Shown in pieces: positions 221-64,000 of a stretch of DNA of 64,000 bases. This DNA comes from Phaeosaccion multiseriatum. Lineage: Eukaryota; Protista; Ochrophyta, other classes. The notes below the pieces were generated by a model, which ran no database searches, was not told the DNA's origin, and saw nothing but the letters and a program-made list of their open reading frames with translations. The DNA lies in NCBI GenBank assembly GCA_965112735.1, contig OZ218962.1:992001-1056000 (forward strand), read 5' to 3'. Within the stretch, counting starts at the first letter, position 1. Each line of letters starts with the position of its first letter. The translations under genes and the position numbers were made by a program.

Positions 221-28743
<28,523 letters not shown>

Positions 28744-32320: not shown

Positions 32321-33385
32321 CGCAGCCAGCCATCGCTCATGTTGTCCGGCCATTGCAATGGGGGCGACGCTGTAGCCGGAAAAGCAGCGGCAGCAGAGGC
32401 CATGAGCAGGCGGAGGAATGTTTTTCTGGGGATTATATTTCTTTTTGTACCTTACGTAAGTACGTCACGTAAGGGAATTGGGTGTCTGTCCGCTGGGGAA
32501 ATGCCCCCCCCCCTGCCCCCCTCGCCCCCCCCCCCCTTTTTTTTTCCACTTTCCAGAGGTGCGTGTGACTTTCTGCTCAGCGTCCAGAGTAGCCATAGGC
32601 AAGGGAGGCACAACAAAGCCATCAGCCGCCGTAGCGCTGCGCCTGTTCTCTTGCGGAAGGGCGGGCAAGCTGCCCATGAGCGATTTCCGTGGCGTGCACA
32701 TCCCCCTTCTCCCCCCCCCGGGAAGGGGGTGCTCGTGCAGAAATGCTGACAACTACGGAAGGGAAGAGGCGATGAAAGCCGAAAGACCATGGATCGGTGG
32801 GTGATCTCAAAGAGCTACACGAAGAGCTACTTCTCCCAGCGTCATTTTGCCGCGTAAAACGTGTGTGTACCACCAACGGGCCAATTTTTCATTCCTGTAG
32901 CGCGCTCCGACTTTTACCCCTTTTATCTTTTGCCTCAGGAGGGGGGGTGAAGATATAAAGCTACAAAGGGAGAAGGGAAAAAAAAAGTGTTCATATATAT
33001 TCCCGCGGAATGTGGCACAGCTGCAGCAGAGAAGAGGAAGGCAGGATGATAACAGCAGCACAGCAGGGGAGAGGAGAAGAAAAAAGGTGGGTAGCTACGA
33101 ATATATTTCGTTGTGGCTGGCACCCGGAAAAATTGCACATGCAACACGTGATGTTCTGGCCATCCCAAGGAATGTCTTCAAGCTCTAGACGCTTGCGGCC
33201 CATAACCCTCTGTTTCTTCATCCCCCTCTCGCCTCCTGCCTCAGCCATGGCTGACTCCCTTTCGATCCCTTTCCTCCAAGCAAGGGAGCGTCATAGTTCT
33301 CCGCGGTCTCTCTCTCACCATCGTTTTACTCCCATGCTTTGCTTGCCCCTCCAGCAGCGATGGAGCTGACCAAGGAGGAGAGAGA

Positions 33386-36300
33386 ATGCCCGGGCCCGGC
33401 AAGGATCAGCCTCAGGGTGCAGCAACAGCAGGTGTGGGGGAGGGACCGGCGGCGGAGCCACCCGCAGCAGCAGCACCAGTGCCAGGCAAAGAGGACGAGG
33501 TTCGAAAGGCGCCTCTCTCCCCCACGCACCCAAACATGGGCAGCGGACCAACGAGAAGCGAGAAAGGCGGCCATCGTCATGGCGACATTGCCATTGTTGG
33601 AATGGCCTGCCGCTTCCCTGGAGGTGCCAACTCTATTCCTGAGCTGTGGGACCTGCTCTGCAGGGAGGGCAGCGGCATCACAGACATGCCCACAGATAGG
33701 TGCGTGAGTGGGCGGTGGCTGGGTCTCGGCGACGGAACCTTGTGGAGATGATGGACAGCGTGCAGCCATCACGGCGCTTAGCAATTTCCCCCTGCCCCCT
33801 GCCACCGCAGCAGATTTTGCTGGAGTGGTTGGGCGGGAGGGAGTTCGGATGGCCGTGGACGGGATGAGGGCTGGAGAATAGAATCACTGTACACACGCTC
33901 GAGAGCTGATGGCGCTCAGCCTCACGTATCTTTCTCTCCTTCTTCACCACGCCCCCTCCCTGCTTCACTGCCCTGGCTGGCGCCTCCCAAAACACCCCTC
34001 GCGCGTTCGCGCACGTCTCTCTCACAGATGGGAGCCTGCGGCCTTGGACAAGCTCAAGCGTGGAGAAAGCGGTTACCCCACGCGGGGGGGCTTCCTCCCC
34101 GACGTAGAGCTGTTCGACAACGCCTTCTTCAACATCTCTGACCCGGAGGCATCCGCAATGGACCCTCAGCAGCGAGGTAAGCTCATCTGACTTCACCTCC
34201 TTGTGTGACGCGGACTTGTTTCGTCTTCAGTAGAACCAACAAGGTCTCACCTGCTTTGTTGTTCTCCTCAACACACGCAGTCATGTTGGAGGTGGCCTAC
34301 GAGACATTTCGCGACGCAGGGCTTGACAAGGAAGCTCTTCTTGAGAGCAAAACAGGTGCGTCGATGTATCACTATCAGAGTAGTGATGACAGAAGCAAAA
34401 AATAGACAAAGAGTACAACTGCTCTGATGCTCTGATGGTCACTGACCTCACCACTTACCTCACAACAAAGTCCTCTTCTCGAACGTCCAGGAGTGTTCAT
34501 CGGGTGCGGCAACGGAGACTGGATGTCCAAAATGCAGTCCCACGCTCCTGGACCGTACGTTGCTACGGGCGCTTCAGAGGCTCTCGTGGCCAATCGGGTC
34601 TCCTTCGTCCTCGGTCTGACTGGACCTTCGCAGACCATCAACACGGCCTCTTCCTCCTCTCTCGTGGCCGTGCACCAGGCCTGCCGAGGCCTCCAAAGCC
34701 GCGACTGTGACATGGCCCTGGCCGGAGGAGTGTCCATCATGACCAATACCGAGCCCTTCTCCGCCATGTCATCGCTGCACTTGCTGTCAGACAAGTGCAT
34801 GGTCTTTGATGCCGCTGCCAACGGCTACGTGCGGGCAGGTGAGCACGAGCGGCGCCTGCGAGACTGTAAAGAATACCAGAAGGACGAGAATGAGATTGAC
34901 ATTTGGAGGAGCTTACCGCAGCGCTGTGATTCACGGCCCTTTCCAGCTCCGCAAGGGGGGCCGTGAGAGGGAGAGGGAGAGGGAGAGGGAGACGGAAAGG
35001 CGGAGGCGGGGAGAGGGAGAGAGGGGAAGAGGGAGCAGGAGCGGGAGAGGGAGAGGGAGAGGGAATGAGAGAGGGAGGGAGAGAAGGGGAGATGGAGAGA
35101 AAGTTCGGGAGTGCGAGAGAGGTAGCGGGAGAGAGAGAGGGAGAAGGCGAGACAGGGAGAGATGGAGAGGAGCAGGGGCAGAGACAGGGAGAAAGGGAAA
35201 GGGAGAGGAAGGGGGGGAGATAAGGGAGATAAGTGCAGGATGAGCAGGGAGTGTTTCTTTGGGTCTGAGATTGTCCTTGTTTTATGAGCCTGATGAGCGC
35301 GGCTCGACCATCCCCTAGCTCACCCTCCAGTCACCTCCATTTGCTGCGTGTGCCCTGTGGCTGCGAGCAGAGGGCTGTGGCGCCGTCGTGCTAAAGCGCC
35401 TCGAAGACGCCATAGAGGCCCAAGACAACATATTGGCGGTGATTCGAGGCTCCTGCATCAATCACACGGGCCTCGGCACGACCCTCACTGCCCCCAACGA
35501 AGCGGCACAGAAGGCCGCGGTCTTGGACTCCGTAGCAGAGGCGGGCATCGCTCTGTCCGACGTGAGCTTCATCGAGGCACACGGCACGGGCACACCCCTC
35601 GGGGACCGCACGGAGTGGGCTTCCATCGCCGGCACCTACGGAGACCACGACCTGGCAACAGCCCGCCGTCTCGTCGTTGGAGCGATCAAGACCAACCTTG
35701 GTCACGCGGAGGCTGCGGCAGGCATTGCGGGGCTCATCAAGACGGTGCTGGTGCTCAGGCATGTCCAAGCGCCTCCCAACCTCAACCTGTCCACGCTGAA
35801 CCCGGCACTGAAGACGGAGGGCAACAGCGCTCTGCTGCCCATCCCCGGAGGCATGACCCCCATCTCCACCCGAATCGGAGGTGCGTTGGGGCCCTTATTC
35901 AAAAACGTTTCCTGTGATCACTCACTCACTCACTCACTCAACTCACTCACTCACTCACTCACTCACTCACTCACTCACTCAACTCACTCACTCGCTCACC
36001 CACTCTCACTCACTCACTCGCTTGTTCTTGAGACAAGTTAAAGAGGACTTTAGATGGGGATGAGCTATCGTATGATGGTAAATGGCTGAACCCGTTCTCA
36101 CCTTGCCCTTCTGCTGGCGGTGATTGCTTCTGCTTCTTTCACAGCTGTCAACTCCTTTGGGTTTGGCGGTGTCAACGCCCACGTCATCCTGGAGGGGACG
36201 GCCATCTCACACGCAGAGAAGACCAACGTCAGAGCCTCCCCGTTCACGAGCAGAAAGGCCTTCAAGCTGCTGCCCGCCCCACCGATATCGGCGGCCGGAA

Positions 36301-39300
36301 AAAACTCCTTGGCAGCAGAGCTCCGCGGTGTCAGTCCAGCTGAACGCCAAGAGAGGCTTCGATCCGTCATCTCCGACATCGCCCTCTCCAGCACGGCAGG
36401 CTCTGTCGGCATCGACATGGACAAGCCTCTCATGGAGGCTGGCATGGATTCGTTGGCGCTCATGGAGCTAAGGCAGCGTCTGCACCTGCTCACGGACATT
36501 CCCGTTAGCAGTGCCGCCCTCTTCGCCCACCCCACCGTGGCGGCCTTGGCGGAGTGGTTGGGCTCAGCGCTCATGGAGGGAAGTGCGAGCAGCCTGCGCC
36601 TGCCCAGGATGATGCCATCGTCCCAAGGGGGGGGCAACGCTTCTGCCCCGCTTGCAATAGTGAGCATGGCGTGCCGCTTCCCTGGAGGCACAGACAGTCT
36701 CGACGCCTTCTGGTCCATGCTGCTGGAGGGAAGGGACTGCATCACCGCCATGCCCCCGGGAAGACTCACTGGTGCGGCGAAGGAGTGGCACGGAGGCTTC
36801 ATCGACGGCGTGGAGATGTTTGACAACGCCACGTTTGGCATCTCCGTAGCCGAGGCCGAGGCGATGGACCCCACTCAGCGCATCATGCTCGAGGTCGGCT
36901 ACGAGGCGCTGCACGAGGCAGGCTTCTCTGTGGCCACGCTGCGCAACAGCAACACCGGAGTGTTCGTGGGCTCCATGCAGCACGGCGACTGGGCCGCGCT
37001 GAACAAGAATGGTGACACCAAAGCTCACTCCATGATGGGCGAATCAGCGGGCTGCCCTGCCAATCGCCTGTCCTACGCACTGGGCTTGCGAGGGCCAAGC
37101 ATATCGGTTGACACGCTTTGCTCTTCCTCGCTCGTTGCCTTGGACACGGCTTGTCGCTACCTTCGCTTCGGCATGTGCGAAGCTGCGGTTGTGGGAGGAG
37201 TGAACCTGCTACTCGGCTCCCGTTCCTTCGAGCAGCTCGACAAGGGAGGTTTCTTGTCCAAGGACTGGTACGTACGGGAGAATGGGGGGGGCTGGCCTTG
37301 GGTAACATCGAGCTCCTGTAATGCGAGTAGAGTTATAAAGGGCTTGCTGACAGGTAGACACAGGAGTCATCCCTCTCATCGGCTTGTCCTTCCTTCTCTG
37401 CCCCCATCTGCCTCGTGCTGTTCCCGAAGGCGCTGCAAGACGTTCGACGCAACGGCGGACGGCTACGTCCGAGGAGAGGGCTGCGGCGCCTTGGTGGTGA
37501 AGCGGCTTGACGACGCGGAGCGCAACGGAGACAGCATCCTGGCCGTCGTGCGGGGAAGCTCCGTGAACCACAATGGGCGCTCTATGCGGCTCACAGCACC
37601 CAGTCCATACGCACAGCAGACGCTGATTGAGGCAGCCTTGGAGGAGGCGGGTGTAGCGGGCAGGGAGGTTCACTTCGTGGAGGCGCACGGCACCGGCACG
37701 GCTCTTGGCGATCCGATTGAGATGAGTGCTCTCAAAGCCGCCTACGGAGAAGGGCGGGAGAACTCTTTCCCACTCATGGTGGGAGCGGTCAAGACTAACA
37801 TTGGTCACTTGGAGGGCGCCGCAGGCATCGCGGGAATCATCAAGACCGTCATGGCTCTTCAGCACAGAGCTGTTCCAGGCAATCTGCACCTCGGTACGCT
37901 CAATCCTCAGCTGGGCATTGATGGATTTCCGGTGGTCTTCCCGTCGTCCAGACTAACCCCCTTGAGTGGCGAGGGACACCCCAATGGCAGCAGCGAGCTC
38001 TTGTACGCAGGAGTAAGCTCGTTCGGAGCAGGAGGCACCAACGCCCACGTGGTGCTGAGCAGCGCTGCGCCGAAAGTGGAGGGGGAGGGTTCGGAGACAC
38101 CGACGAGGAGGAAGACGGAGGTCGCCACATCTCTGGTCGCCTTCCTCTTCACGGGGCAAGGCTCCCAGTACCCCGGCATGGGCAAGGAGCTCTACGATGA
38201 GGTGAGTTCGCTTGCTCGTTTTAACCTCAGTATCTGTCAGCGCTCCTCTTGTCATCTGCGTCGCTTCGCATCACCTCGGCCAACTACCTTCGTTCTCATA
38301 TGCTTTTCTCTCTTGTCTCTGCTTTGCGTGTCTCTCGTTCGCTGCCTCAACAGCGCGAGGTCTTTCGTGAAGCTGTTCGGCGGTGTGATGGCCTCCTGCA
38401 GGACCAGGCCTGGCTGGACAAGTCTGTGGTGGAGCTCCTATATCCTGCTGCCGAGGAAGAGGAGAGTGCACAAGCGCTGCTGAAGGAGACACGCTACTGC
38501 CAGCCGTGTCTGTTTGTGCTGGAGTACGCCCTGTGTGAGCTGTGGAAGTCGGAGGGCGTGGAGCCGTCCATGGTGATGGGCCACAGTCTGGGCGAGGTAG
38601 TGGCGGCGTGCGTGGCCGGCGTCATGTCGCTGGAGGACGGGCTGATGCTGTCCGCCAAGAGAGGAGCCGCCATGCAGGCCTGCCCCGAGGGGGATGGAGT
38701 GATGTTCGCAGTGAGGGCGAGCAGGTGGACAACCTTGGCGAGCATCGCCGCTGTGGGGGTGGCAGGCGAAGTGGTGCTGGCGTCGTCGAATGGACCGAGG
38801 GCGAGCGTGATCTCTGGAGCGCGCAGTGCTGTGGGCAAGGTGGTAGAGATGCTCACGGCGGATGGGGTGGGCTGCAAGGCCCTGGAGGTGTCGCACGCCT
38901 TCCACTCTCCTCTGATGGAGCCCGCTGTACGTGCGCTGGAGGAGGTTCTGAGGCAGGTGTCATTCAGCACCCCACGCATTCCCCTGGTGTCCAACGTGAC
39001 GGGTGAGGTGGTGAGAGGGGAGGAGGTGACGCAGGCGACGTATTGGGTGCAACACATGCTATCGCCGGTGCTGTTCGCGGAGAGTATCACCACGCTTCTC
39101 CGGGAGAGGCCTGAAGGTGTACGAGTGGTAGAGATTGGGCCCAGCTCTGTGCTGATCAACATGGCACGGCAATGCGAGGGAGAGAGGTCGGACGTGATGT
39201 GGCAGCCGTCCATGCGGTGGGAGGGGAGCGACACCGCCTCGTTCGACAGAGCAGTGGCGGCAGTGCTGGGCAAGCCCACACCTCTGTTCCCCACCCGTCG

Positions 39301-42300
39301 TGCGCTCCCTTGGTTCGAGCAGCAGGCGCATGCGATGGTTCCAAGCGGCGGCGTCGTCGAGAAGAAGGGAGGAACACTCCTCTCATGCCGCTTCACCCCT
39401 CAGCTCAAGGGCTTGCTGCAAGATCACGCGGTGGGAGGAGTGGTGCTCATGCCGGGCATGGGGTACATCGAGATTGGCCTTGCCGCCTTGCTGAAGGGCA
39501 AGCCTTTCCCTGGTGAGAGGCAAGTGGTCCTGAAGGGCCTGGTCTTCATGGCTCCACTGGAAATTGCAGGCGCTCGTGCCCCCTATGTGGACCGTACGGT
39601 GGAGGGCTCCACTACTGTGGTCGCTTCTGAAGTCAGTGCCTTCATCACTGCCCGCGGCAGCGTGCAGTTTAACGGAGGTCCCCACGGCAAGGCTGGAGAG
39701 ACGGTGGCGAAGGCGACTTCCCTTCAATTGCGCACAAGGACGGAGGCAGAGACATTGGACGTGGCGCGGGTGAGAGCCGCGGTGGGGGACGAAGACATCG
39801 CCGAGGGGCTGTACCTCAAGCTTGCCAGTGCTGGGTATGACTACGGTGCCAGCTTTGTCCGAACGCAGCATCTGTTCGCCGCCAGTGGACAGGCCTTGTC
39901 GGTTGCGGCGGCAATGGATGGCAGCCTATCGGCGGAGTGGGAGATCAACGGCTTCTACCTCCACCCTGCAGTGCTGGATAATGCCGCGCACACCATGCTG
40001 GCGCTCTTGCCGGAGGAGCTGACGAGCAAGGCCTTTGCCGCCGTCTTCTTGCCCACCGGCTGCGAAGAGGTGCTTGTGCGAGGGGCCATCACGAGCGAGA
40101 AGGTGTGGGTGCATGCGGTGGTGAAGAAGGTGGACTCTCAAGCTCGTGCGATCGAGTGCAACGTCGTGATAGCACACTTCGAGACGAAGCAAGTGCTCGT
40201 GCAGCTCAACCACTTCCGGATGCAGCTGGCCCGAGGCTTCTCCCGCACCAACCCCGTCACCCGAGCGCTGTATTCTCTACAGTGGCTGCCCAACGATTCC
40301 ATCTCCCGCAGCAGAGGTGACGTGGAAGAGCGAGAGGAAGCTTGGCTGCTCCTCACCAGCGGCGCTCGTGGCAGCTTGGACAAGGCAGCGAAAGAGAGCT
40401 TGCCCATCTCTGTGACACTGACGGAGAGGGAGGTCAGGAGCATCGACGACTCCACCCTCGCTTCAGAAGCGCCCGCAGGATGGGGCCGTGTGGTGTGCAC
40501 ATTGTTCGGCGGCAAGCAGCAGAGCCCCAGCCAAGAGGCACAGACACTCCTCCTGTTGCTACAGCAGCTTTTACGAAGGCCAGCTCCCTTGATGGTGCTG
40601 GTGCAGGACACACTAAGCGGCGGCGAGGGGTGGAGGCATCACTGGGTGTACGGCATGATTCGAACCGCTCGTATCGAGCACCCTTCACTAGCCATCACGG
40701 TGGTGGACGTGGGCAGCGAGTACCTGCCCAAGTGCTGGACCATTGCGTCACTGGGGCAGGACGTGTGGGTGCGAGACGGACGATACCTCACGCCTCACCT
40801 GGCGCCCTCAGCAGATGCGCACCTCCCATTCTCCTTCGATCTCATAGCGAGGGGAAGCATCGAGGGAGGCTTGAAGCGCAGGGACGTACTCCCTTCCGAG
40901 AGAGACGCTGCCTTGCAGGACGGGGAGATTGAAATTTGTGTCAAGGCGGTGGGGCTCAACTTCAGAGACGTGCTGAATGTGCTCGACCTGTACCCTGGCG
41001 ACCCTGGACAGCCTGGCATCGAGCTATCGGGAGTGGTCACTCGAGCATCGCGAAAGTCGCGCTTTCAAGTGGGAGACAAGGTCTACGGGTTTCCGGACAA
41101 GGGCTGCTTCCGCTCCCACGTAACGACAAGTGACGTGTGTCTGGCCAACATGCCTTCCAGCAGGACCTTTGAGGACATGGCAGCGCTGCCTACCGCGTGG
41201 CTCACAGTGGTGCACGCATTCGAGCAACTCGCTGGCTTGAAGCGTGGTGAGAAGGTGCTCATCCATGCCGCGTCAGGTGGAGTGGGTCTGGTGGCCGTGC
41301 AGATTGCTCAGCGCATCGGAGCGGAGATCTACGCCACTGCTGGATCCGAGGAGAAGCACGCCTACTTGCGAGGCCTGGGCGTGAAGCACATTGCGTCGTC
41401 GCGAGATGCGGAGGCCTTCAAGGCTTCCATTGGAGCTGCGAAGGTGGATGTGGTGCTCAATTGCCTGTCGGACAACTTCATCCCTTACTCTCTGGGGCTG
41501 CTGACGAAGAACGGGCGCTTCATGGAGATCGGCAAGCGAGGCGTGTGGACCAGGGAGGCGATGAAGGCTGCCAGGCCCGACGTGCTGTACGAGCTGATTG
41601 CGCTGGACTCCATGATAGCAGACGACTTCAAGGCCGAGAAGCAGGGCTGGGCGTTCGCTGGGCTGGAGCAGCTGACAGCGGACAGTGAGGCGGGCAGGGC
41701 CGAGGCGCTACCAGTGAAGACATTCGACTTGAGGGATGAGCTTGTGGAGGCAATGAACTTCCTCAGAACTGCGAAGCACATTGGGAAGGTTGTGCTCAGT
41801 AGCCCTGAGTGTGGCATTCCCGTCGTGCGAGACGGGACTTACGTTATCAGCGGTGGGCTGGGGGCGCTTGGGCTGGCGACTGCGAAGCATTTGGCTGATA
41901 AAGGAGCTCGTCATCTTGTACTGCTCTCGCGAGGGGGAAAGGTCAAGGCGGACTCCAAGGCGCTGTGGGAGGAGCTTCTCAACGTGCCCGGCGGAGTGAG
42001 CACCAGGGCTGTATCGTGCGACGTGTCTAGCGCGCAGTCGCTTGGGAAGGCCCTAGACACGGCGCTCAGCAGCATGCCGCCCGTGCGAGGTGTCATCCAC
42101 GCTGCCGGCGTGCTCGACGATCGCTTGCTGGTGGACCAGACGCCCGAAAGTATCGAAGAGGTCTTCAAGCCGAAGGTGGAGGGCGCTTGGAATCTGCACG
42201 AGCTGTCGCTGCAGATGGCCTGGCCCTTGGACTTCTTTGTGTCCTACACATCCATGGCAGGTGTGTTAGGCAATGCAGGCCAGGCCAACTATGCTGCAGC

Positions 42301-45300
42301 CAACGCTGCTGTGGACGGGTTGATGCAGCATCGTCGGCGCCTCGGTTACTCCAGCTCTGTGGCCCTCCAGTGGGGGCCGTGGGGCGAAGCTGGCATGGCC
42401 GCTCGGTCCGAAGTTGCCATGGCCAGTCTGGAGATGGCCGGCGTTGGGCTCATCAGTAAGGCATTGGGTATGGCGGCGCTTGATGCCGGCGTGTCAGCCC
42501 CATCTGCGGCATCACGCGAGCTCTTGGTTCTGCCTGGCATGGACTGGCCCGCCTTCTCTGAGACGGCTAGCAACCCGGGGATGCTCGATGCTCTCGTTAG
42601 AGAGGCTTCGATGGTGGGACCGCAGAACAAGACTAGCAACAGTGTGACTAACGAGGTTAAGCGCGACCTACTGGAGCTGTCGGAGGGTGAGCGAAAGCCC
42701 ATGCTGCAGGCTTTAATCATGGAGATGGCAAAAGCATGCATTGGGGAAGCAGGCATCGAGCTCGACGCTTTGAGGCCTTTGATGGAGGCTGGGCTGGACT
42801 CCATGTCTACGGTGGAGCTTCGGAGTCGACTTCAAGCTCGTTTCGGCGTGCCGGTCCCCAACGACGTGCTCTTCAGTTACCCCTCAGTGGCAGCGCTGAC
42901 AGAGTGGCTCGAGGGCTTGGTCTTGGGGGCTGAGGAGGGTGAAGATGAGGACAGGAATGCTGAACCCTCTGGAGGTGGCATGACTGCCCCCCTGGCTGTT
43001 GTGGGCATGGCGTGCCGCTTTCCGGGGGGCTCGAACAGTCCAGAGGCCTTCTGGTCAATGCTGCGAGCAGGTACTGACTGCATTCAGACTGCCCCTCTGA
43101 ACCGGTGGGCGGGAAAAGAGGGGAGCGAGGATTGGCAAGGCAGCTTCATTGCTGAGGTGGAAATGTTTGACCCCGCCGTATTCGGCATCTCGTTTGCCGA
43201 AGCGGCTGCGATGGATCCGCACCAGCGAGTGATGCTGGAGGTTGGATACGAGGCATTGGTCAACGCGGGGTGCGACAAAGCAAGCTTGGCGGGCAGTCGG
43301 GCAGGCGTCTTCATCGGCATGATGAGCCTCGGCGACTGGGGCTACCAGGGCAAGCATGTAGGGGCTGGAGTATACCGCACTATGGGTCGCGTCCAATGTG
43401 GCGTTGCCAATCGGCTCTCGTACGTGCTGGGGCTGCAGGGGCCGTCCATGACCACTGACACGGCGTGCTCGTCATCGCTGGTGGCCTTGGACAACGCCTG
43501 CAGCAGCTTACGCATGGGCAAGTGCGATTCCGCTGTCGTCGGGGGCGTCAATTGCTTGCTCGGGCCAGTGGCCTTTGAGGACATTCAGGGCAGCGGCTTC
43601 CTGTCGCCGGACTGGTAAGTTCTTCCTTTTCGTTCCTCCGCACTTATGGTTCTGCTCCTCCGTCTCGTCCTACTTGCGCCGCCGACTACAACTCCCCTCA
43701 CGCTACCCATGCCCTTCTCAGGCGCTGCAAGACGTTCGACGCGTCGGCAAACGGATACGTGCGGGGTGAAGGGTGCGGTGCCGTTGTGCTGAAACGTCTA
43801 GATGACGCCCTCGCTGCCGGAGACACGATCCTCGCCGTGATTGAGGGCTGTGCCGTGAACCACAACGGAGCCAGTGCCCGCCTCACAGCCCCGAGCCCCG
43901 CCGCTCAGCAGAGACTCATCGAGGCGACGCTGCGTGAGGCCGGTCGAGAGGGCTCCGAGGTACGCATCGTGGAGGCGCACGGCACGGGAACCTCCCTCGG
44001 TGACCCCATCGAGATCAGTGCTCTCAGGGCCACGTACGGGAAGAACCGTGACGACTCTTTCCCGCTGGTGGTCGGTGCGGTCAAGACCAACATTGGCCAT
44101 CTGGAGGGTGCGGCGGGAATTGCCGGGGTCATCAAGGCCGTCTTGATGCTGCAGCACCGCGCTGTGCCGGCCAACCTCCACCTCGAGAGTATCAACCCGG
44201 AGCTGGACATGGACGGCTTCCCCGTGCAGCTCCCGTCGGCGATGGTGGAGCTGGAGGACGAGGGAGATATGTTGGTGGGGGTGAGCTCGTTCGGGGCGGG
44301 AGGAACGAACGCTCACGTGCTGCTGAGGAGCTACGGGAACAAGCCTGACTCCGTATTGACGGCTGGCATGAATCGCGATGGGGGGCCCTTCGTCAAGGAG
44401 GAGGCGCTGTTCCCGAATCGTGTGGCCTTCCCGTGGTACAAGAGCGATAATCACGCTTTTTGTCCGAGTGGAGGGGTGCGAGATGAGAAGGGCGGGGTGC
44501 TGCTGTCCTGCCCATTCTCTCCAAGGCTCAAGGGCCTGTTGCAGGAGCACGCAGTGGGGGGGGTGGTGCTCATGCCGGGCATGGGCTACATTGAACTGGC
44601 CCTGGCCACGCTGCTGAGGGGCGAGGCCTTCCCCGCCGATGGCCAGGCGCGCATGAAGGGCCTCGTCTTCACGGCCCCGCTGGAGGTGGCAGGTGCCCGT
44701 GTGCCTGGGGTGGAGCGGATGGTGGATGGGTCCACGACGGTGGCATGCTCGGAGGTGAACGTGTTCCTCTCTGCCCACGGCAAGACGCGGATCACGGGCG
44801 GCCCCCGCGGCAAGGCAGGTGAGGCTGTGGCCAGGGCGGCGTCAGTGGTGCTGGAGGCAAGAGAGGCTACTGCAATGATGGACGTGAGGAGCATCCAGGA
44901 GGCAGTGGGGCAGCGCGACATTTCGGGTGAGCTGTACGCCACGTTCGCCAAGGCCGGCTTCAACTACGGCCCCCGCTTCAGGCGGACAGAGCGCTTGTAC
45001 GCTGCCGAGGGACAGGCTCTGTCCGTGGCGACAGCGCAGGACCCCAGCCTGTGCTCTGAGTGGGAGGTGCGTGGATTCTACCTCCACCCCGCCGTGCTGG
45101 ACAGTGCCGCACACACCATGCTTGCCCTTCTGCCTTCTGAGCTGACCAAGGGTGCTACATTCTTGCCAGCTGGATGCAATGACGTGGTTGCGAAGGGCGC
45201 CATCAGAGCGAACAAGGTGTGGGTGCATACCGTGCTCACCGAGATCAGCGACAAGCGCGACAGCATCAACTTTGACATTGTCATTGCCGACTTTGACAGC

Positions 45301-54300: not shown

Positions 54301-57300
54301 TCGTCCTGCAAGGAGCCAACTTTGTGGCTCCGTTGGAGATTGAGGGTTTCCGGTACACGGGCACGGACCAAGCGCAGAGCCGCAATACTATTGTCTGTGA
54401 CGGCTTGAGTGCTCTATACGCGAGCGATGGAAGCATGCAGTTTTTCGGAGGCGTTGAGGGTGACAAGGGAGCGACCGCGAGGATGGACCACGTGTCTGTC
54501 ATGGAGCGAACCGACCCGCGTGACATGCTCGATATAGAGGGAATCAAGGGGCGGGTAGGGACTGTGGACTCGGCCCATGGCCTGTACAAGGCAATGGCGG
54601 ATGCCAACTTCAACTATGGCCCTCGCTTTGAGCGGAATTTACAGATGTTCGCCAATGACGGAGAGGTGCTATCGGTCGTGCGTGCTCTGGACTCGGACCT
54701 GTGTGAGCCTTGGGAGGTAACGGGCTTTGCTCTGCACCCTGCGGTGCTCGACAATGCGACTCACTCACTTTTGCACGCAATCCCACGCCAGTTGCTGAGA
54801 GCGAGGGATGGAGCTCCATTCCTGCCTGTTGGCTTCGACGAGGTGGTCGTTTCTGCACCCATAACGGGAGAGACAGTTTGGGTGCACACAAGGCTCGTCG
54901 AAGTGGAGCCCGGGGGCAACAGCATCAAGTTTGATATCAAGATTGCCGACTTTGATAGCAAGCAGATTCTCGTGGAGATGCGTGGGTTCCGCACTCAGCG
55001 GGCGAGAGGCTTTGCGCGCCCCAATCCGCTTCGTCGGGCGATGTACACGCTGGAATGGCAGACCACTGAGCCGTCTACACAGGAGGAGGCCCCTGGTAGT
55101 GATACTGACCCTGCTGAGGCGGCGGCGCGACCGAAGTGGCTGGTGGTTATTCCGCAGGACGAGGGGGAGCGGGAGACTTCAATCATTGCTGCAGTGCGGC
55201 TCTGTGTTCCGGAGAACGTGCACGTACACGCCCGATATGGGGGGATGGACGGCTCCTGCGATGATGGTGCTTTTCTTCTCGGAGAGGACGAGTGGGCTCG
55301 CGTCTTGTACGTGCTAATTCCCGGAGCTGGCGAAGAAGACGCAGACGGAAACCTGCAAGCACGAGCGGCCTACGCCCTGATGGCTCTACTCAGGAGCCTG
55401 TGTACTGCATCAAGGGTGCCGCTGACGGTTTTGACGAGAGGCGTCCAAAGCGGCGAGGACTGGCGTCACAGCTGGGTGACTGGGCTGGTGCGGACTGCGA
55501 GGGTGGAGCACCCTTCCATGCAGATTGGCGTGGTGGACCTCAGCGGCAAGAAGGCCCAAGACAGCGAACTTGCCTTGGGATTGACCGTCTCTACTGCCAC
55601 AGAAGATGTTTGGGTACGCGACGGACAGTGCTGGGCTCCTCAGCTTGTACGTCAGCCCCTGCAGCTTCCCTTCTCACTGGATTTGAAGGCAAGAGGCAGC
55701 ATTGCAAACGCGTTCGCCCTTCGTGATGATGTGAACCATGGCAAACACCAGCGCCTTGACCCAGTTGGCAGCCATGTGGAGGTGGCAGTGAGGGCTGTTG
55801 GGCTGAACTTCTGGGACGTGCTGAATGTGCTGGACATGTACCCTGGCGATCCTGGAGATCCCTGCTCCGAGTTTGCCGGGGAGGTGATCAGTGTGGGAGC
55901 AAGCTCGCGCTTCCGTGTCGGCGATGCAGTGTTTGGCTTTGCAGACGGAGGATGTTTGCGCAGTCATATGACGACGAGTGATGTGTGTCTGGCCGTGATG
56001 CCGGCCGTACTGAGCTTCGAGCAGGCCGCTGCACTTCCCACCGTGTTCCTCACCGTGAGGAAGGCCCTTGAGGGCCTCAAGGCTGGAGAGAAGGTTTTGA
56101 TTCATGCCGCATCGGGCGGTGTGGGCCTTGCCGCGGTGCAGTATGCTCAGCGGGTGGGCGCAGAGGTGTACGCTACTGCCGGTGCTGCTGCGAAGAATGA
56201 CTTCCTCCGGAGCTTGGGAGTTGAGCACATTGCGTCATCGATAGACGCAGAGGCATTCAAGCAGTCCATGGGTGAGATGAAGGTGGATGTGGTGCTCAAC
56301 TCTCTGAGTGAAGACTACATTCCCTTCTCGTTGGACATGCTACGCGAGGGTGGTACATTCGTCGACATTGGCAGGCGAGGCGTGTGGAGTCACGAACAGA
56401 TGCGCACCGCCCGGCCCGGTATAAGGTACGAGCTGCTGGCATTGGATACTATGATTGAGTCTGACTTCGTAGCTCGTGAGCCAGGCTGGATCAGTGGCGG
56501 GCTGCAGCGTCTTGCTGAAGACTGCATGTCTGGCAATGTGAAGCTCTTACCAACCATACCCTTTGACATGAGGGAGGATACTCAGAAGGCCATGGCATTC
56601 ATGAGCCAAGCGAAGCACATCGGCAAGGTGGTGCTGACCAACCCCTCGTACGGTGTGCCAGTTGTGTCTGATGGCACGTACGTCATCAGCGGCGGTCTGG
56701 GGGCTCTCGGCCTCGTGACTGCTCAGCACCTCACGTCGAGGGGCGCTCGTCACTTGGTGCTGTTGTCGAGGAGTGGAAAGGTCGCCGAGAGCATGACGGA
56801 ACAGTGGCAGCAGCTTCGAAACATTGTGGAGCTGACTATCCATACTCCTACTTGCGATGTTGCTGACGCTGAGGCACTTCGGACTTGTCTGGGGGGTGTA
56901 CTGCCTCTGCTGCCCCCTGTGCGCGGTGTGGTGCATGCTGCCGGGGTGCTGGATGATAAGCTGCTGGGAGAGCAAACGGTGGAGAGCGTGACGAACGTCT
57001 TCCGACCGAAGGTGCAGGGAGCGGTCAACTTGCACGAGCTTTCGTTGGCTTGGGCGAACGAGGAGGGGCGCGCTCCTGGCCTTGACTTCTTCTTTTGCTT
57101 CACATCCATGGCCGGAGTACTCGGCAACGCTGGACAGGCCAACTACGCTGCGGCGAACGCGGCGGTGGATGGGCTGATGCGGCACAGGCGACACCTCGGG
57201 CTCGCAGGGACGTCATTGCAGTGCGGGCCGTGGGCTGACGTTGGTATGGCCGCCCAGCTCGATATCGTTCAAAAGCAGTTGGAGTTGGCGGGTGTGGGCA

Positions 57301-60300
57301 CGGTGTCAGCTGAGCTGGGCATGGCTGCCTTAGATGCCGCTGCGATGCCGTCAGCGTATTTGGGCAATGTGGCCGTTCTGCCGGGGATGGACTGGGCCAA
57401 GTTTGCAGACAGCATGGGTGCGTCCCGCGGCTCGTTCCTGCTGTCAGGGCTTGTCTCAACAGCAGCAGGCGCATCAAGCAACACCAAAATCAACAATGAA
57501 GTGCGCGAGGCGCTCTTGAGACTGCCCCCTGGCGAGCGACAGCAATCAGTGCGACTGGCGGTGCTTGATATGGCCAAGGACCTACTTGGAGAGGGTGCCG
57601 AAGAGCTGGATGCGAACACGCCTTTGATGGAAGCTGGTCTTGACTCTTTGTCAACAGTGGAGCTGCGCGGCCGGCTACAGGCTCGCTTTGGGGCTGTAGT
57701 GACCACTGACGTGCTCTTCGCGTATCCCACGGTAGCGGCGCTGGCAGTGTGGATCGAAGCGGAGGTGCTTGGCGAAGTAGAGGAACCCTCTAGCAGTCGC
57801 TCTGCGGCGATCGCTGCTGAAGCGCACCGCACTGACTCAAGGGCGCCGCTGGCCGTCGTCGGGATCGCCTGTCGCTTCCCTGGAGGGGTTAAGAACCCCG
57901 AGGACTTCTGGGCTATGCTCTGTGCAGGGACAGACTGTATTGGAGCCAGCCCTGTTGGTCGCTGGGCCGATGATGGTCAGAAGCAGTGGCAAGGGGGCTT
58001 CATTGATGGAGTGGAGGCTTTTGATAACACCTTCTTCGGCATCTCTGCGGCCGAGGCGGGTGCCATGGACCCGCATCAGCGCGTCATGCTGGAGGTGGGG
58101 TACGAGGCTCTGTACAGGGCGGGATACCGCAAGGACACACTACATGGCAGCAACACAGGTGTGTTCGTGGGTGCGTCCGGCAGCGACTGGAGCTCAATGG
58201 TAGACGATTCGAACAAGGGTGCGTACTCCGGCCTGGGCATGTCCAATGCGAGTCTGGCAAATCGGATGTCTTACGTGCTGGGCCTTGGAGGGCCGAGCAT
58301 GAGTGTAGACACGATGTGCTCGTCGTCTTTGGTGGCACTGGAGGGGGCCTGCAGTAGCTTGCGACTGGGGAAGTGTGACATCGCCTTGGTGGGAGGCGTC
58401 AACTTACTGCTGGGTACACAGACGTTCGAGACCGTCGCCGCAGGAGGTTTCCTGAGTCCTGACTGGTAAGTCCGTGTCTCTTCTGTGTCGATGGGAGCTT
58501 GTTCTTGGGGCCGGTATGAGAGCCAGATCACAAGGCCGAAGCTGTTTGAAAGGCCCCTGTTGCTGATGGATTACCTCTTCTCTATTCTTCACTTTTGCGA
58601 ACCCACAATTCCTCATGGTCAGGCGCTGCAAGACGTTCGACGCTGCGGCCAACGGTTATGTTCGAGGTGAGGGCTGCGGCGCCGTGGTGCTGAAGCGACT
58701 CGACGATGCACAGACCAATGGCGACCACATCCTCGCTGTCGTCAATGGCTGCGCTGCAAACCACAACGGGAGAAGTTTGCGCTACACTGCCCCGAGCCCT
58801 TCTGCTCAGCAGCGTCTGATGGAGCAGGCACTGGCGGAGGCCGGCTTGAACGGTCATGAGGTTGATTACGTGGAGGCACACGGCACCGGGACTTCTCTCG
58901 GCGACCCCATCGAGATGAGTGCTTTGAGGGCCGTGTATGGCCATGGCCGCGAGGAAGCTCGGCCCCTGGTGGTTGGGGCGGTGAAGACCAATATCGGGCA
59001 TCTAGAGGCTGCGTCCGGAATCGCTGGCTTCATCAAAGCTCTGCTGGTCCTTCAGCATGGATCTGCTCCCCCAAATCTCCATATGAGGAAGCTCAATCCG
59101 GAGCTTCGTTTGGATGGCTTTCCGGTGACTTTGCCGTCTACCATGGTGCCACTAAGTGCCAGGGACGGGGAGAGGCGCACTGCTGCTGTCAGCTCCTTCG
59201 GCGCGGGAGGAGCCAACGTCCATGCGGTGCTTAGCAGCTTCGGGCCGACGATGGTAGAGGAGAGCGAGAGCGAAGCCTTGCTGCAGCTTGATGGGCAGCA
59301 AAGCAAGGAGAGTTCGCCGGTGACATTCTTGTTCACAGGACAGGGTTCGCAGTACGTGGGCATGGGCAGGGAGCTGTACGAGAAGGAGGGCGTATTCCGC
59401 GAGTGCGTGCAGCAGTGCAGCACGCTGCTCATGGAGCGGGCCTGGCTGGACAAGTCTGTGGTGGAGCTCATGTACCCTGCCGCCGCTGAGGATGGGAAGG
59501 AGGAGGAGGAGGAGGAGGAGGAGGAGGAGGAGGAGGAGGAGGAGACTGCACAAGCGCTGCTGAAGGAGGCACGCTACTGTCAGCCGTGCCTGTTTGTGCT
59601 GGAGTACGCCCTGTGTGAGCTGTGGAAGTCGGAGGGCGTGGAGCCGTCCATGGTGATGGGCCACAGTCTGGGCGAGGTAGTGGCGGCGTGCGTGGCCGGT
59701 GTCATGTCGCTGGAGGACGGGCTGATGCTGTCCGCCAAGAGAGGAGCCGCCATGCAGGCCTGCCCCGAGGGGGATGGCGTGATGTTCGCAGTGAGGGCAG
59801 GCAAGGAGGCTACTTTGGCAAACATCGACGCTGCGGGGGGGGCAGGCGAGGTGGTGCTGGCGTCGTCGAATGGACCGAGCGCGAGCGTGATCTCTGGAGC
59901 GCGCAGTGCTGTGGGCAAGGTGGTAGAGATGCTCACGGCGGATGGGGTGGGCTGCAAGGCCCTGGAGGTGTCGCACGCTTTCCACTCTCCTCTGATGGAG
60001 CCCGCTGTACATGCGCTGGAGGAGGTTCTGAGGCAGGTGTCATTCAGCACCCCACGCATTCCCCTGGTGTCCAACGTGACGGGTGAGGTGGTGAGAGGGG
60101 AGGAGGTGACGCAGGCGACGTATTGGGTGCAACACATGCTGTCGCCAGTGCTGTTCGCAGAAGGCATCCACACGCTGGTGGAGCACTGGATGGGAGACGG
60201 GAGGGGGGCTGACCTGAGCATTGTTGAGGTGGGCCCCAGCCCTGTGCTGAGCAGCATGGGAGCCAAGTGCGAACGTCGCGAGGGGCTGGTCTGGATCTCC

Positions 60301-63300
60301 TCCCTCACGCGCGGGAAGAGCTCCGAGGATTCGTTTGGAGCAGCTCTGGGCAGTGTAACGGGGCCGGAGCATCTTGAGCTTTATCCGACTCGCCGATCAT
60401 TTCCTTGGTACAAGCCTCCGTTGGCGCTTATGCCAAGTGGTGAGGTGGTCCAAGAGGGAGACGGAATGCGGCTCGCCAGCCCCTTCTCCCCTCACCTCAA
60501 GGACCTTCTCAAGGACCATGCCGTCAACAATATGGTGATCGTTCCGGGGGTGACGTACATTGAAGTGGGTGTCGTCGCTGCTCTAGGAGGAAGACAGCTC
60601 GGGGTGGAGCAGCAGGTAGTCCTGCAAGAAGCCAGCTTTGTTGTTCCACTGGAGATTGAGGGTTTCCAACAGGCCGGCACGGACCAGGCCCAGAGCCGCC
60701 ATACAATGGTCTGTGCCGGGATGAGTGCCCTTCTCGCGGCAGATGGAAGCATGCAGTTCTTCGGAGGTGCCACGGGCGACAAGGGCACCACGGCAAGAAT
60801 GAAGCACGCGTCTGTCATAGAGCGAAGCTCGGTGCGTGTTTCGCTGCACGTGGAATCCATTCGAGCTAGAGTTGGCGAGCATGACGTATCGAGTGGGCTC
60901 TACAAGTCTTTCGCAGACGCCGGCTTCCAGTACGGCCCCCGCTTTCAGCGGACCCGCCACATGTACGGAGGGGACGGAGAGGTTCTGTCGGTCGTGTGTG
61001 CCATGGATGAGGAGCTGTGCGAGCCGTGGGAGATGAAGGGCTTTGTTCTGCACCCCGCGGTGCTGGACAATGCTACCCATACCATCATGCAAGCGCTGCC
61101 AAGGAAGCTGCTCAAGGAGGGGGGGGACTCTCCATTCCTACCTGCAGGCTTTGACGAGGTGGTCGTTTCCGCCTCCATGACGGGAAAGAACGTGTGGGTG
61201 CACACGAAGCTGAGTGAGGTCCAGTCAGTGGCGGACAGCGTCAAGTTTGACATCCGCATTGCAGACTTTGACAGCAAAGAGGTGCTTGTGGAGATGCGGG
61301 GCTTCCGCGTGCAGCGAGCGAGGGGCTTTGTGCGTGTCAGTCCCGTTCGTCGTGCAATGTACGCATTGGAGTGGCAGGCCGCTAAACCGTCTACACAGGA
61401 GGAGGCCCCTGGTAGTGATAATGACCCTGCTGAGGCGGCCGTGCCACAGAGGTGGCTGGTGGTTATTCCACAGGACGAGAGGGAGGAAGAGATTTCAATC
61501 GTTGCTGCAGTGCGGCGCTGTGTTCCGGAGAACGTGCACGTACACACTCGATATGGGGGGATGGACGCCTCCGGGGATGATGGTGCTCTTCTTCTTGGAC
61601 AGGACGATTGGACACGAGTCTTGTACGTGCCGATCTCTGGGGATGGCGAAGAAAACGTAGACGGGGGTCAGCAAGCACGAGCGGCCTACGCTCTGTTATC
61701 GCTACTCAGGACCATGTCCACTGCGTCGAATGTGCCGCTGACGGTCTTGACGAGGGGCGTCCAAAGCGGCGAGGACTGGCGTGACAGCTGGGTGACAGGT
61801 CTGGTGCGGACCGCGAAGATGGAGCACCCCTCCATGCAGATTGGTGTGGTGGACCTGAGCGACAAGAAGGTCCAAGACAGCGAGCTTGCCTTAGGCTTGG
61901 CCTTCCCTACTGCCACAGAAGATGTTTGGGTACGAGATAGGCAGTGCTGGACGCCTCAGCTTGTACATCAGCCCCTGCAGCTTCCTTTCGTGCTTGACTT
62001 GAAGGCAAGAGGCAGCATTGTGAACGCTTTCGCCCTTCGTGACGATACGAGCGTTGGTAAGCATCAGTCCCTCGACCCAGCAGCTGGCAGCTCCGTAGAG
62101 GTGGCAGTGAGGGCCGTTGGGCTGAACTTCCGGGACGTGCTGAATGTGCTGGATATGTACCCTGGAGATCCTGGAGATCCTTGCTCCGAGTTTGCCGGGG
62201 AGGTGGTCAGTGTGGGAGCAAGCTCGCGCTTCCGTGTCGGTGATGCAGTGTTTGGCTTTGCGGACGGAGGATGCTTGCGCAGTCATATGACGACGAGTGA
62301 TGTGTGTCTGGCCGTGATGCCGGCTGTGCTGAGCTTCGAGCAGGCCGCTGCACTTCCCACCGTGTTCCTCACCGTGAGGAAGGCCCTTGAGGGCCTCAAG
62401 GCTGGAGAGAAGGTACTGATTCACGCCGCGTCTGACGGTGTGGGCCTTGCCGCCGTCCAGTATGCTCAGCGGATCGGCGCAGAGGTGTACGCCACTGCTG
62501 GTGCTGCTGTGAAGCATGACTTCCTCCGGAGCTTGGGAGTTGAGCACATTGCGTCTTCAAGAGACGCAGAGGCGTTCAAGCAGTCCATGGGGGAGATGAA
62601 GGTGGATGTGGTGCTCAACTCTCTGAGTGAAGACTACATTCCCTTCTCGCTGGCCATGCTAAGCCAGGGTGGTACATTCGTCGAGATTGGCAAGCGAGGC
62701 GTGTGGAATCACGACGAGATGCGCACCGCCCGGCCCGATGTGAGGTACGAGCTGCTGGCACTGGACAGCATGATTGAGTCTGACTTGTCGGCGGGTGAGC
62801 CGGGCTGGATAAGCGACGAGCTGCAGCATCTGGCTGAGGACTGCATGTCTGGCAATGTGAAGCCCTTACCAACCATACCCTTTGACATGAGGGAGGATAC
62901 TCAGAAGGCCATGGTACTCATGCACCAAGCGAAGCACATCGGCAAGGTGGTGCTGACCAACCCCTTGTATGGTGTACCAGTGGTGTCCGATGGCACGTAC
63001 GTCATCAGCGGCGGTCTGGGGGCTCTCGGCCTCGTGACTGCTCAGCACCTCGCGTCGAGGGGCGCTCGTCACCTTGTGCTGCTGTCGAGGAGTGGGAAGG
63101 TCGCCGAGAGCATGACAGAACAGTGGCAGCAGCTTCAGAACAAGGTGGAGCTGATCCATACTCCTACTTGTGATGTTGCTGATGCTGAGGCACTTCGGAC
63201 TTGCCTGGGGGGCGTGCTGCCCCTGCTGCCCCCTGTGCGCGGCGTGGTGCATGCTGCCGGGGTGTTGGATGATAAGCTGATGGGAGAGCAGACGGCGGAG

Positions 63301-64000
63301 AGCGTGACGAACGTCTTCCGACCGAAGGTGCAGGGAGCGGTCAACTTGCACGAGCTTTCTTTGAGTTGGTCGAGGGAGGAGGATCACGCCTCAAGCCTGG
63401 ATTTCTGTGTGCTTCACATCCATGGCTGGAGTACTGGGCAACGCTGGACAGGCCAACTACGCTGCGGCGAACGCGGCTGTGGATGGTTTGATGCGGCACA
63501 GGCGACACCTCGGCCTCGCAGGGATGTCATTGCAGTGGGGACCGTGGGCTGACGTTGGTATGGCCGCCCAGCTCGACAGTGCGGTCCAAAAGCAGTTTGA
63601 GCTTGCGGGAGTGGGCACGGTGTCAGCTGAGCTGGGTATGGCTGCCTTAGATGCCGCTGTGATGTCGTCAGCGTCTTCAGCGTCTTTGGGTGATGTGTCC
63701 ATCCTGCCTGGGATGGACTGGGCCATGTATGGGAAGGCCACGAGAGGTGGGCGTGTTCACATGCTCGAAGGGCTTTTGGGCGATGTAAAGGGGGATCTGA
63801 AAGCAGGAGAAGGAAATTCGGAGCTACATGAGGAGTTGTTGGACCTGCCACCGGTGGCGCGCCAGGCGATGGTCGTGAACAAGGTGAAGCAGGTTGTGGC
63901 GCACTGCATTGGAGACGAAGGTGGTCTGATTCATGATTCCACGCTCCTCATGGAGGCCGGTGTGGACTCGTTGGCTTCGGTGGAGATTGTCAACCGACTC
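33386..64000 (+). CDS. Giant multimodular type I polyketide synthase (loading module plus at least 5 extension modules), 3' partial
   Basis: 12 GT-AG exons with consistent phases: 33386-33699, 34028-34176, 34281-34355, 34491-34838, 35371-35880, 36145-37267, 37430-38201, 38354-43614, 43722-48770, 48935-53194, 53348-58465, 58623->64000 (~28.4 kb coding, ~9450 codons). Contains six KS (MDPxQR, TxCSSS, HGTGT, KxNxGH, SFGxGG), three AT (GHSLG, HAFH), four DH, four ER, five KR and six ACP (G[LMV]DS[LM]). Start codon uncertain; one frameshift near 63406. Confidence 0.95.
33584..36570 (+). other. PKS loading module: KS (active-site Cys>Ser) - ACP1, no AT
   Basis: DIAIVGMACRFPGG; INTASSSSL (TCT at 34649-34651); EAHGTGT; KTNLGH; NSFGFGGVNAH; ACP EAGMDSL at ~36435-36455. 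Confidence 0.88.
35918..36020. repeat. (CACT)n microsatellite in PKS intron 5; GA-rich tract at 34965-35230 in intron 4
   Basis: Direct reading. Confidence 0.92.
36645..42920 (+). other. PKS module 2: KS-AT-DH-ER-KR-ACP (fully reducing)
   Basis: DTLCSSS; FLFTGQGSQY, GHSLG, VSHAFHS; DHAVGGVVLMPG and HPAVLD; LNFRD, LIHAASGGVG, EIGK; ISGGLGALG, VLDD, GQANYAAAN; GLDSM. Confidence 0.92.
40825..42520 (+). repeat. Near-identical direct repeat (ER-KR block), copy 1; copy 2 at ~45978-47670
   Basis: Constant offset of 5153 nt; off-frame ORFs in the track recur almost verbatim (e.g. 40936/46089, 41708/46861, 42187/47340). Confidence 0.92.
42985..48080 (+). other. PKS module 3: KS-DH-ER-KR-ACP (AT-less)
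   Basis: DTACSSS; KS ends ~44333 and the post-AT linker motif LFPNRVAFPW follows after ~25 aa; EHAVGGVVLMPG; ER and KR near-identical to module 2; GLDSM. Confidence 0.92.
43722..44335 (+). repeat. Near-identical repeat (C-terminal half of KS3); copy at ~48935-49548 in KS4
   Basis: Offset 5213 nt; the peptide from RCKTFDASANG to NAHVLLRSYG is nearly identical. Confidence 0.9.
48140..52500 (+). other. PKS module 4: KS-AT-KR-ACP (no DH, no ER)
   Basis: DTACSSS; GHSLG, HAFH; KR ISGGLGGLG, HAAGVTGAK (no LDD), NQSAYAGAN; GLDSM. Confidence 0.9.
49612..50595 (+). repeat. Near-identical AT-coding repeat; copies at ~59330-60350 and partly at ~38405-39085
   Basis: Long identical stretches such as YCQPCLFVLEYALCELWKSEGVEPSMVMGHSLGEVVAAC at nucleotide level. 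Confidence 0.9.
52566..57770 (+). other. PKS module 5: KS-DH-ER(degenerate?)-KR-ACP (AT-less)
   Basis: QTACSSS; LYSTRQAFRW shortly after KS; DHAVNNVVIIPG; ER with LNFWD, SSID, DIGR substitutions; VLDD; GLDSL. Confidence 0.9.
54110..57400 (+). repeat. Diverged direct repeat (DH-ER-KR of module 5); copy at ~60430-63720 in module 6
   Basis: Collinear with many identical blocks (PSGEVVQEGDGMRL, PSTQEEAPGSD, ER core, VVSDGTYVISGGLGALG). Confidence 0.88.
57843..64000 (+). other. PKS module 6: KS-AT-DH-ER(degenerate?)-KR-ACP; frameshift within KR, ACP cut by window end
   Basis: DTMCSSS; GHSLG, HAFH; DHAVNNMVIVPG; LIHAASDGVG; VLDD; after the shift at ~63406 the next frame gives FTSMAGVLGNAGQANYAAAN...EAGVDSLASVEIVNRL. 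Confidence 0.88.

Follow-up and report, generated by a model that had tools for sequence, protein, structure and literature searches.

Algal multimodular polyketide synthases (PKSs) evolve via module duplication and displacement of the acyltransferase (AT) and are almost always AT-less, and in photosynthetic heterokonts, Aureococcus perhaps excepted, the PKSs are of the iterative cis-AT type (Shelest et al., 2015; PMC4661987). The pelagophyte Chrysophaeum taylorii carries AT-less modular PKSs with unusual end domains (PMC10366177), giant proteins resembling type I fatty acid synthases (FAS-I) and PKSs (PKS-I) occur in the chromerids Chromera and Vitrella and in apicomplexans (PMC7464705), and PKSs of Nannochloropsis have been tentatively tied to mid-chain hydroxy lipids (PMC6872974). 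The KS^S loaders of polyene PKSs, in which Ser replaces the active-site Cys of the ketosynthase (KS), have a proposed role in choosing a malonyl-type starter or decarboxylating it (PMC4540446). In the present study, we analysed a stretch of 64,000 nucleotides from the microalga Phaeosaccion multiseriatum, a relative of the brown algae (assembly GCA_965112735.1, contig OZ218962.1, positions 992,001 to 1,056,000 of the forward strand), hereafter called the window, in which a PKS gene starts at position 33386 and runs beyond the window end. It is likely that this is a single nuclear, intron-split gene for a multimodular type I polyketide or fatty-acid-type synthase belonging to the protist PKS clade. 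To our knowledge, there is no ochrophyte multimodular PKS with a known product. The gene adds to a class of protist enzymes that is known but has yet to be characterised; particular to it are the alternation of cis-AT and AT-less modules, an AT-less KS^S loader and a homogenised AT core. A first-pass annotation of the window had overstated the degree of surprise, as comparable protist PKSs have been described (PMC4661987, PMC10366177, PMC7464705).

Pfam detected PKS domains, and no others, in the long plus-strand open reading frames (ORFs) at 36.1–64 kb, where six very long ORFs, preceded by several short ones, extend from 36.1 kb to the window end. The long ORFs break off at position 222 of the KS N-terminal profile (PF00109) and the next ORF picks up at position 223, indicating that the stop codons between the ORFs fall mid-domain. 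With spliced KS4 as a tblastn guide and the junctions then read directly from the sequence, a gene model was obtained that begins with ATG at 33386 and consists of 12 exons and 11 introns, all GT-AG, giving one type I PKS (Table 1). Excision of the 11 introns gives back unbroken KS and AT alignments. KS1 is divided by five of the introns into six exons, a further intron falls close to where AT2 begins, and five lie in KS2–KS6, the latter (introns 6, 8, 9, 10 and 11) at the identical KS site between SPD[W/G] and RCK and all in phase 2. These same-site introns are only about 40% alike among themselves, in contrast to the conserved exons on either side. Intron 6 keeps the reading frame, has no stop codon and is thus concealed within a long ORF; tblastn placed an insertion of about 54 residues exactly at the site of introns 8–11. 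The GC content at the first, second and third codon positions was 0.65, 0.48 and 0.71 in the coding sequence and flat (0.54–0.56) in the introns. Furthermore, at 33.4–38.4 kb the window differed from public DNA contigs, some of which may derive from paralogues, at 36 exonic positions, and 19 of these differences were synonymous when read in the modelled frame, whereas an unconstrained sequence would be expected to show roughly 25%, about half that share. The predicted structure is one spliced gene, not five separate ones, with all 11 GT-AG introns required by homology and predicted to be spliceosomal. The first-pass annotation had also read the long PKS ORFs as exons of one gene, joined by eleven GT-AG introns into a loading module and five extension modules; the KS is indeed cut at the same residue each time, our independent gene model needs exactly eleven introns to restore the domains, and the spliced model recovers the same modules. 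The locus thereby supplies a complete hand-checked exon map for six modules of a gene that automated annotation would split or miss.

In three of the introns, further sequence features were observed. Within intron 1, at 33742–33973, the public contigs differ from the window by two deletions or replacements of about 55–60 nt; together with the exon differences, which affect about 1 base in 80, this indicates that the public runs represent a strain or haplotype other than that of the assembly. Intron 4 contains a long GA-rich (GAGAGGGAG-like) tract at 34950–35250, and positions 34956–35087 were passed over as repeat in the read-contig comparison. A CACT/CACTCA repeat run at 35912–36030 in intron 5 reads in frame as SLTHSLTHS and could mislead an ORF-based reading.

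The spliced product contains, in addition to KS and AT, dehydratase (DH), enoylreductase (ER), ketoreductase (KR) and acyl carrier protein (ACP) domains in the order KS(Cys to Ser)-ACP; KS-AT-DH-ER-KR-ACP; KS-DH-ER-KR-ACP; KS-AT-KR-ACP; KS-DH-ER-KR-ACP; KS-AT-DH-ER-KR-ACP. The six KS and six ACP domains lie in one spliced frame, except for a frameshift in KR6. KS1 has Ser instead of the active-site Cys (TASSS), retains both His (HGTGT, NLGH) and is followed by ACP1, as in a KS^S loader, and the profile scan found no AT of its own between KS1 and ACP1 at 36188–36348. KS2–KS6 have the full Cys-His-His set (T[ALM]CSSS, HGTGT, N[IL]GH), and the phosphopantetheine serine motif [ML]EAG[MLV]DS[LM] (DSL or DSM) is present in all six ACPs. 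All three ATs carry GHSLG and HAFH, a pattern that marks malonyl specificity. The LDD motif is present in KR2, KR3, KR5 and KR6 and absent from KR4. Two ERs deviate in conserved motifs: in ER6, GGVG is changed to DGVG (Asp for the first Gly of the nucleotide-binding motif), and in ER5, LNFRD is changed to LNFWD (Trp for Arg). An AT is present only in modules 2, 4 and 6, so that the gene does not have the AT in every extension module that defines a cis-AT PKS. In the AT-less modules 1, 3 and 5, the KS-AT linker and the AT are cleanly gone, only about 40–50 residues separate the KS end from a post-AT-linker-like motif (about 50 codons from the end of KS3 to the start of DH3), and the usual post-AT motif LYxTRxxFxW is retained. 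A scan of all six frames, using domain profiles derived from this gene, found no PKS domains elsewhere in the window on either strand. Neither an acyl ligase or FAAL domain in this gene nor a release domain in the window was found; the release step lies beyond the window, as the first-pass annotation had concluded. In AT6, a run of about 20 Glu codons at 59530–59600 occupies a loop in which AT4 has a shorter KEEEK stretch; it is a simple coding repeat expansion within an otherwise 95% identical domain.

A protein search among 1.84 billion representatives returned neither the gene's own full-length product nor a close orthologue. The best matches were giant PKSs with 36–47% identity, of which the top one was from Chromera velia and the other source-named ones were bacterial. 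Among single modules, the best relative with full coverage came from Chrysoparadoxa australica; this AT-less module matched 89% of the query at 40% identity and was followed by Symbiodiniaceae and Vitrella proteins. In an architecture survey of the matches, the Chromera velia protein proved to combine, as here, fully reducing modules of the AT-less and cis-AT kinds; the survey was used for this protein only because its profiles, built from the present gene alone, under-call divergent bacterial domains. By these comparisons there is no characterised orthologue, and the closest module-level relative is about 40% identical. The comparison of the KS domains with protist and bacterial KSs that the first-pass annotation had proposed placed all six KSs of the window in a protist clade with Chrysoparadoxa, chromerids and Symbiodiniaceae (support of 100 in the SH-like approximate likelihood ratio test, SH-aLRT); the clade holds 22 rows, namely the six window KSs, 14 protist KSs and one Logan protein with two KS rows, and the tree is a small sample chosen from the matches of our own search. 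KS2–KS6 were monophyletic, and the AT-less KS3 was sister to the cis-AT KS4 (SH-aLRT 100). This placement indicates that the modules multiplied within the eukaryotic lineage and that the AT-less state is recent. The AT-less state of these modules thus does not mean membership of the bacterial trans-AT clade; the separate KS clade and nearby free-standing AT of trans-AT systems were not found, with no AT elsewhere in the window and no genome-wide search made for a discrete AT. The Chrysoparadoxa relative, the protist KS clade and a dynein heavy chain gene upstream agree with the earlier view of a multimodular, non-iterative-type PKS of an ochrophyte-like alga.

The modules form a mosaic. Protein identity was 97% for ER2/ER3, 96% for KR2/KR3, 95% for AT4/AT6, 92% for KR5/KR6 and 85–86% for KS3/KS4, and only 57% for DH2/DH3. 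An AT core of about 1 kb shows 90–100% DNA identity between modules with sharp edges, and its flanks only 40–65%. The summed contig depth of the four DNA-like public runs, which does not equal copy number, rose 13–25-fold exactly at the start of the AT2 core (38438 onward), which suggests that the genome contains many nearly identical copies of the core. One gene thus displays module duplication, clean AT loss and AT-core homogenisation, processes thought to shape algal PKSs. AT-less (1, 3, 5) and cis-AT modules (2, 4, 6) alternate strictly, a suggestive arrangement but one that three ATs in six modules would show by chance in about 1 in 10–20 cases. The idea that this alternation is a working principle, in which each AT charges its own ACP and the ACP of the AT-less module just upstream while the AT core is a cassette kept uniform or moved among modules and genes, is speculative and on present evidence rather unlikely; the upstream ACP is a conceivable second target because it must dock on the adjoining KS anyway. 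If true, alternating AT use would build half the usual AT complement into the line, and the gene would follow a PKS logic between the cis-AT and trans-AT types, a live case of the intermediate state that was not found by Shelest et al. (2015). An alternating-AT layout, should it prove functional, would bear on the origin of AT-less assembly lines.

Compared with described systems, the gene shares with other algal and protist multimodular PKSs a giant polypeptide, several KS...ACP modules, protist-clade KSs, many AT-less modules and module duplication. It differs from the PKSs in Shelest et al. in that one heterokont polypeptide has three modules with and three without a cis-AT, in strict alternation. 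PKZILLA of Prymnesium parvum (bioRxiv 10.1101/2024.01.29.577497) similarly consists of intron-containing giant eukaryotic assembly-line genes, which automated calling misses or splits and in which most modules are AT-less. Compared by description only, PKZILLA is several times larger and is tied to a known polyether, whereas the present gene has six modules with mostly full reduction. CpFAS1 of Cryptosporidium parvum has an acyl ligase-ACP loader at its start and an AT in each module. In contrast, the present gene starts with KS^S-ACP, half its modules lack an AT, and one module is KR-only; it has no ligase domain and its module 4 is without DH and ER, which departs from the CpFAS1 type with its acyl-ligase loader, solely fully reducing modules and terminal reductase. 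The terminal domain of the present gene falls outside the window. It nevertheless resembles CpFAS1 and CpPKS1 as a eukaryotic, colinear series of mostly fully reducing KS-AT-DH-ER-KR-ACP modules, a type of synthase believed to supply resistant walls with long saturated chains (PMC7464705). Like the polyene KS^S loaders RimA, PimS0 and NysA, which are proposed to act in starter selection or decarboxylation and not in condensation (PMC4540446), KS1 is followed by an ACP. However, these bacterial loaders have their own AT (KS^S-AT-ACP), whereas here KS^S adjoins ACP1 directly; as KS1 groups inside the protist clade, its Ser probably arose independently. PKS-Clade II of Nannochloropsis (PMC6872974) is an ochrophyte PKS that is likewise proposed to leave a 3-hydroxyl, which elongation makes mid-chain. 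It is, however, a single AMP-ACP-KS-AT-KR module with membrane helices, primed by an AMP-ligase and served by separate elongases, whereas the later elongations are here built into the same polypeptide.

From the domain order, we propose the following course of synthesis. KS^S-ACP1 would prime the line, most likely by converting malonyl-ACP1 to acetyl through decarboxylation, the route suggested for KS^S and KSQ loaders, or, less likely, by taking a preformed acyl chain. Five colinear malonyl extensions would follow, in which modules 2, 3, 5 and 6 would reduce fully and module 4, with only an A-type-like KR, would leave a hydroxyl; the lack of LDD in KR4 and of DH and ER in this module fits hydroxyl retention. 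After two more extensions, the hydroxyl would end at C7 of the ACP6-bound chain. An acetate starter would thus give a 7-hydroxy-C12 acyl chain, or a 2-enoyl chain if ER6 is dead owing to its DGVG motif, and a fatty acyl starter would be lengthened by ten carbons to a 7-hydroxy chain. The AT-less modules 1, 3 and 5 would have to receive malonyl in trans, with the AT of the following module as the simplest source. The product is most likely a mostly saturated fatty chain with one hydroxyl, and it is a testable prediction that this group lies seven carbons from the thioester end. The first-pass annotation had proposed a long, reduced and partly oxygenated lipid or polyketide; a reduced chain that keeps one oxygen agrees with the set of reductive domains, and the proposed length is less certain, as five extensions add only ten carbons.

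The reading frame of the gene changes in KR6. DNA alignment with KR2, KR3 and KR5 showed that 2 nt are missing, the alignment at the gap reading GATTTCT--GTGTGC. KR6 is split between frame 1 (62983–63411) and frame 2 (63407–63577), which meet at the same profile position with a 5-nt overlap. Past the gap, frame 2 is open to 64000 for 198 codons, includes the catalytic Tyr of KR6 and the serine motif of ACP6, and has normal codon periodicity (0.68/0.44/0.66). An intron as the cause of the frame change was ruled out by the KR profile, which is continuous on both sides of the overlap; nearby GT..AG pairs remove multiples of three or delete conserved residues. A database search with the KR6–ACP6 piece found no near-identical proteins across the site, none exceeding 53% identity. 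The gap reflects either an error of the consensus, assembly or haplotype or a lesion that is real and very recent. The first-pass annotation had described a protein of more than 9400 amino acids with its frame open in ACP6 to the window end. That figure (9,452 codons to 64000) is reached only by a silent correction of the frameshift, and owing to the 2-nt gap the spliced frame stops at 63550. The frameshift is also a practical caution for annotating or expressing this gene.

Several observations weigh against an intact gene with the structure and product proposed here. The frame is broken in KR6, and from 33386 to its stop it comprises 9,302 codons (9,302 amino acids). When four public runs from one sample were laid on 33200–39000, the contigs spanned the introns without GT-AG joints, and the runs therefore look DNA-like. 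An exon upstream of 33386 is conceivable, but the minus-strand pseudouridine synthase gene at 29082–31495 leaves little room for it, and no upstream exons (FAAL, AT or others) were found, the ORFs at 31.5–33.2 kb having no meaningful Pfam matches. The ER5 and ER6 substitutions suggest that the last modules may be decaying, and the proposed starter, colinearity, AT sharing and product are all read from the domain order. Each long ORF is flanked by stop codons and many bacterial PKSs are among the top database matches, as would be expected if the ORFs were separate adjacent genes or a bacterial-type cluster from contamination. This is highly improbable, because every ORF boundary cuts the KS at the same residue with the remainder 107–164 nt downstream after GT..AG, no ORF has its own ATG or upstream signals, the KS tree groups these domains with protists instead of bacteria, and the flanking genes, dynein heavy chain included, are eukaryotic. 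The possibility that the gene is broken has more in its favour, although we consider it the lesser one. The KR6 gap would then be real and the protein would end 48 codons later, without ACP6, any release domain or KR6's catalytic Tyr, as in a recent pseudogene or a one-haplotype null allele. The frameshift at 63406/63407 sits inside a continuous KR alignment, the DGVG of ER6 and the LNFWD of ER5 would make several lesions in the last two modules, and a single frameshift in 28 kb is unusual for a polished assembly. However, frame 2 stays open to its last codon in the window, its KR and ACP motifs are intact and its periodicity is normal, the gap lies in a T-run/(TG)n context typical of consensus errors, and the 9,250 upstream codons show no further defect.

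With an intact spliced gene as the preferred reading, the chain that it would handle can also be construed differently. Rather than a de novo acetate-primed PKS, the enzyme may be a fatty-acid elongating synthase, a multimodular FAS-I-like enzyme in the manner of CpFAS1 that receives a preformed C14–C18 acyl chain on KS^S or ACP1 and adds ten carbons; wall or storage lipids would then contain its 7-hydroxy very-long-chain acyl product. Such a role would suit the full reduction in four of the five extension modules, the interpretation of the chromerid and apicomplexan relatives as elongating enzymes (PMC7464705), and the tentative link drawn between PKS enzymes and the mid-chain hydroxy fatty acids and diols found in other ochrophytes (PMC6872974). 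The gene is, however, without an acyl ligase or FAAL domain and without a loading AT, and the known KS^S cases are proposed to act on malonyl-type starters (PMC4540446), so that we regard elongation of a preformed chain as plausible but somewhat doubtful.

Table 1. Features of the PKS gene and its neighbours in the window (window positions; intron lengths in nt).
Feature	Position	Strand	Details and support
PKS gene, start codon to window end	33386–64000	+	3' end cut off; 12 exons, 11 introns; gene model
Module 1, KS1-ACP1	33587–36578	+	Pfam, tblastn, motifs, profile scan
Module 2	36651–42937	+	KS2 36651–38054, AT2 38142–39244, DH2 39350–40255, ER2 40880–41812, KR2 41825–42412, ACP2 42695–42937; Pfam, profile scan, motifs
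Module 3, no AT	42992–48096	+	KS3 42992–44322, DH3 44473–45369, ER3 46033–46965, KR3 46978–47565, ACP3 47854–48096; Pfam, profile scan
Module 4, KR only	48145–52505	+	KS4 48145–49535, AT4 49608–50588, KR4 51384–51983, ACP4 52269–52505; Pfam, motifs, profile scan
Module 5, no AT	52572–57782	+	KS5 52572–53960, DH5 54129–55028, ER5 55734–56651, KR5 56664–57263, ACP5 57540–57782; Pfam, motifs, profile scan
Module 6	57849–64000	+	KS6 57849–59229, AT6 59326–60339, DH6 60445–61344, ER6 62050–62970, KR6 62983–63577, ACP6 63869–64000 (cut by window end); Pfam, motifs, profile scan
Intron 1	33700–34027	+	328; GTGCGT..CACAG; within KS1; excision joins KS profile positions 41 and 38
Intron 2	34177–34280	+	104; GTAAGC..CGCAG; within KS1; gene model, junction reading
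Exon 3	34281–34355	+	75 nt; directly before intron 3
Intron 3	34356–34490	+	135; GTGCGT..TCCAG; within KS1; gene model, junction reading, domain-profile scan
Intron 4	34839–35370	+	532; GTGAGC..AGCAG; within KS1; GA-rich low-complexity; gene model
Intron 5	35881–36144	+	264; GTGCGT..CACAG; near KS1 end; (CACT)n-like run; gene model, domain-profile scan
Intron 6	37268–37429	+	162; GTACGT..GAAG; KS2 at SPD[W/G]-RCK site; tblastn, gene model
Intron 7	38202–38353	+	152; GTGAGT..AACAG; phase 0; near AT2 start; gene model, domain-profile scan
Intron 8	43615–43721	+	107; KS3, conserved KS site; phase 2; gene model
Intron 9	48771–48934	+	164; KS4, conserved KS site; phase 2; tblastn, gene model
Intron 10	53195–53347	+	153; KS5, conserved KS site; phase 2; gene model
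Intron 11	58466–58622	+	157; KS6, conserved KS site; phase 2; gene model
AT core, module 2	~38440–39140	+	DNA identity profile
AT core, module 4	49600–50590	+	DNA identity profile
AT core, module 6	59326–60339	+	DNA identity profile
KR6 frameshift	63400–63412	+	2 nt missing between 63406 and 63407; DNA alignment with KR2, KR3, KR5
Pseudouridine synthase (RluA-type) gene, upstream neighbour	29082–31495	-	No link to polyketide synthesis
Dynein heavy chain gene parts, upstream	1255–2556, 14459–15994	-	No link to polyketide synthesis

Upstream of the PKS gene, long simple repeats adjoin one another at 15500–20500, namely (TG)94, a perfect (CCT)50, (AGGG)50, (GTGA)306 over 1.2 kb, (CAA)126 and (ACCCCAT)92, and this pile of repeats accounts for the GC skew of +0.74 and -0.49 in the same region.

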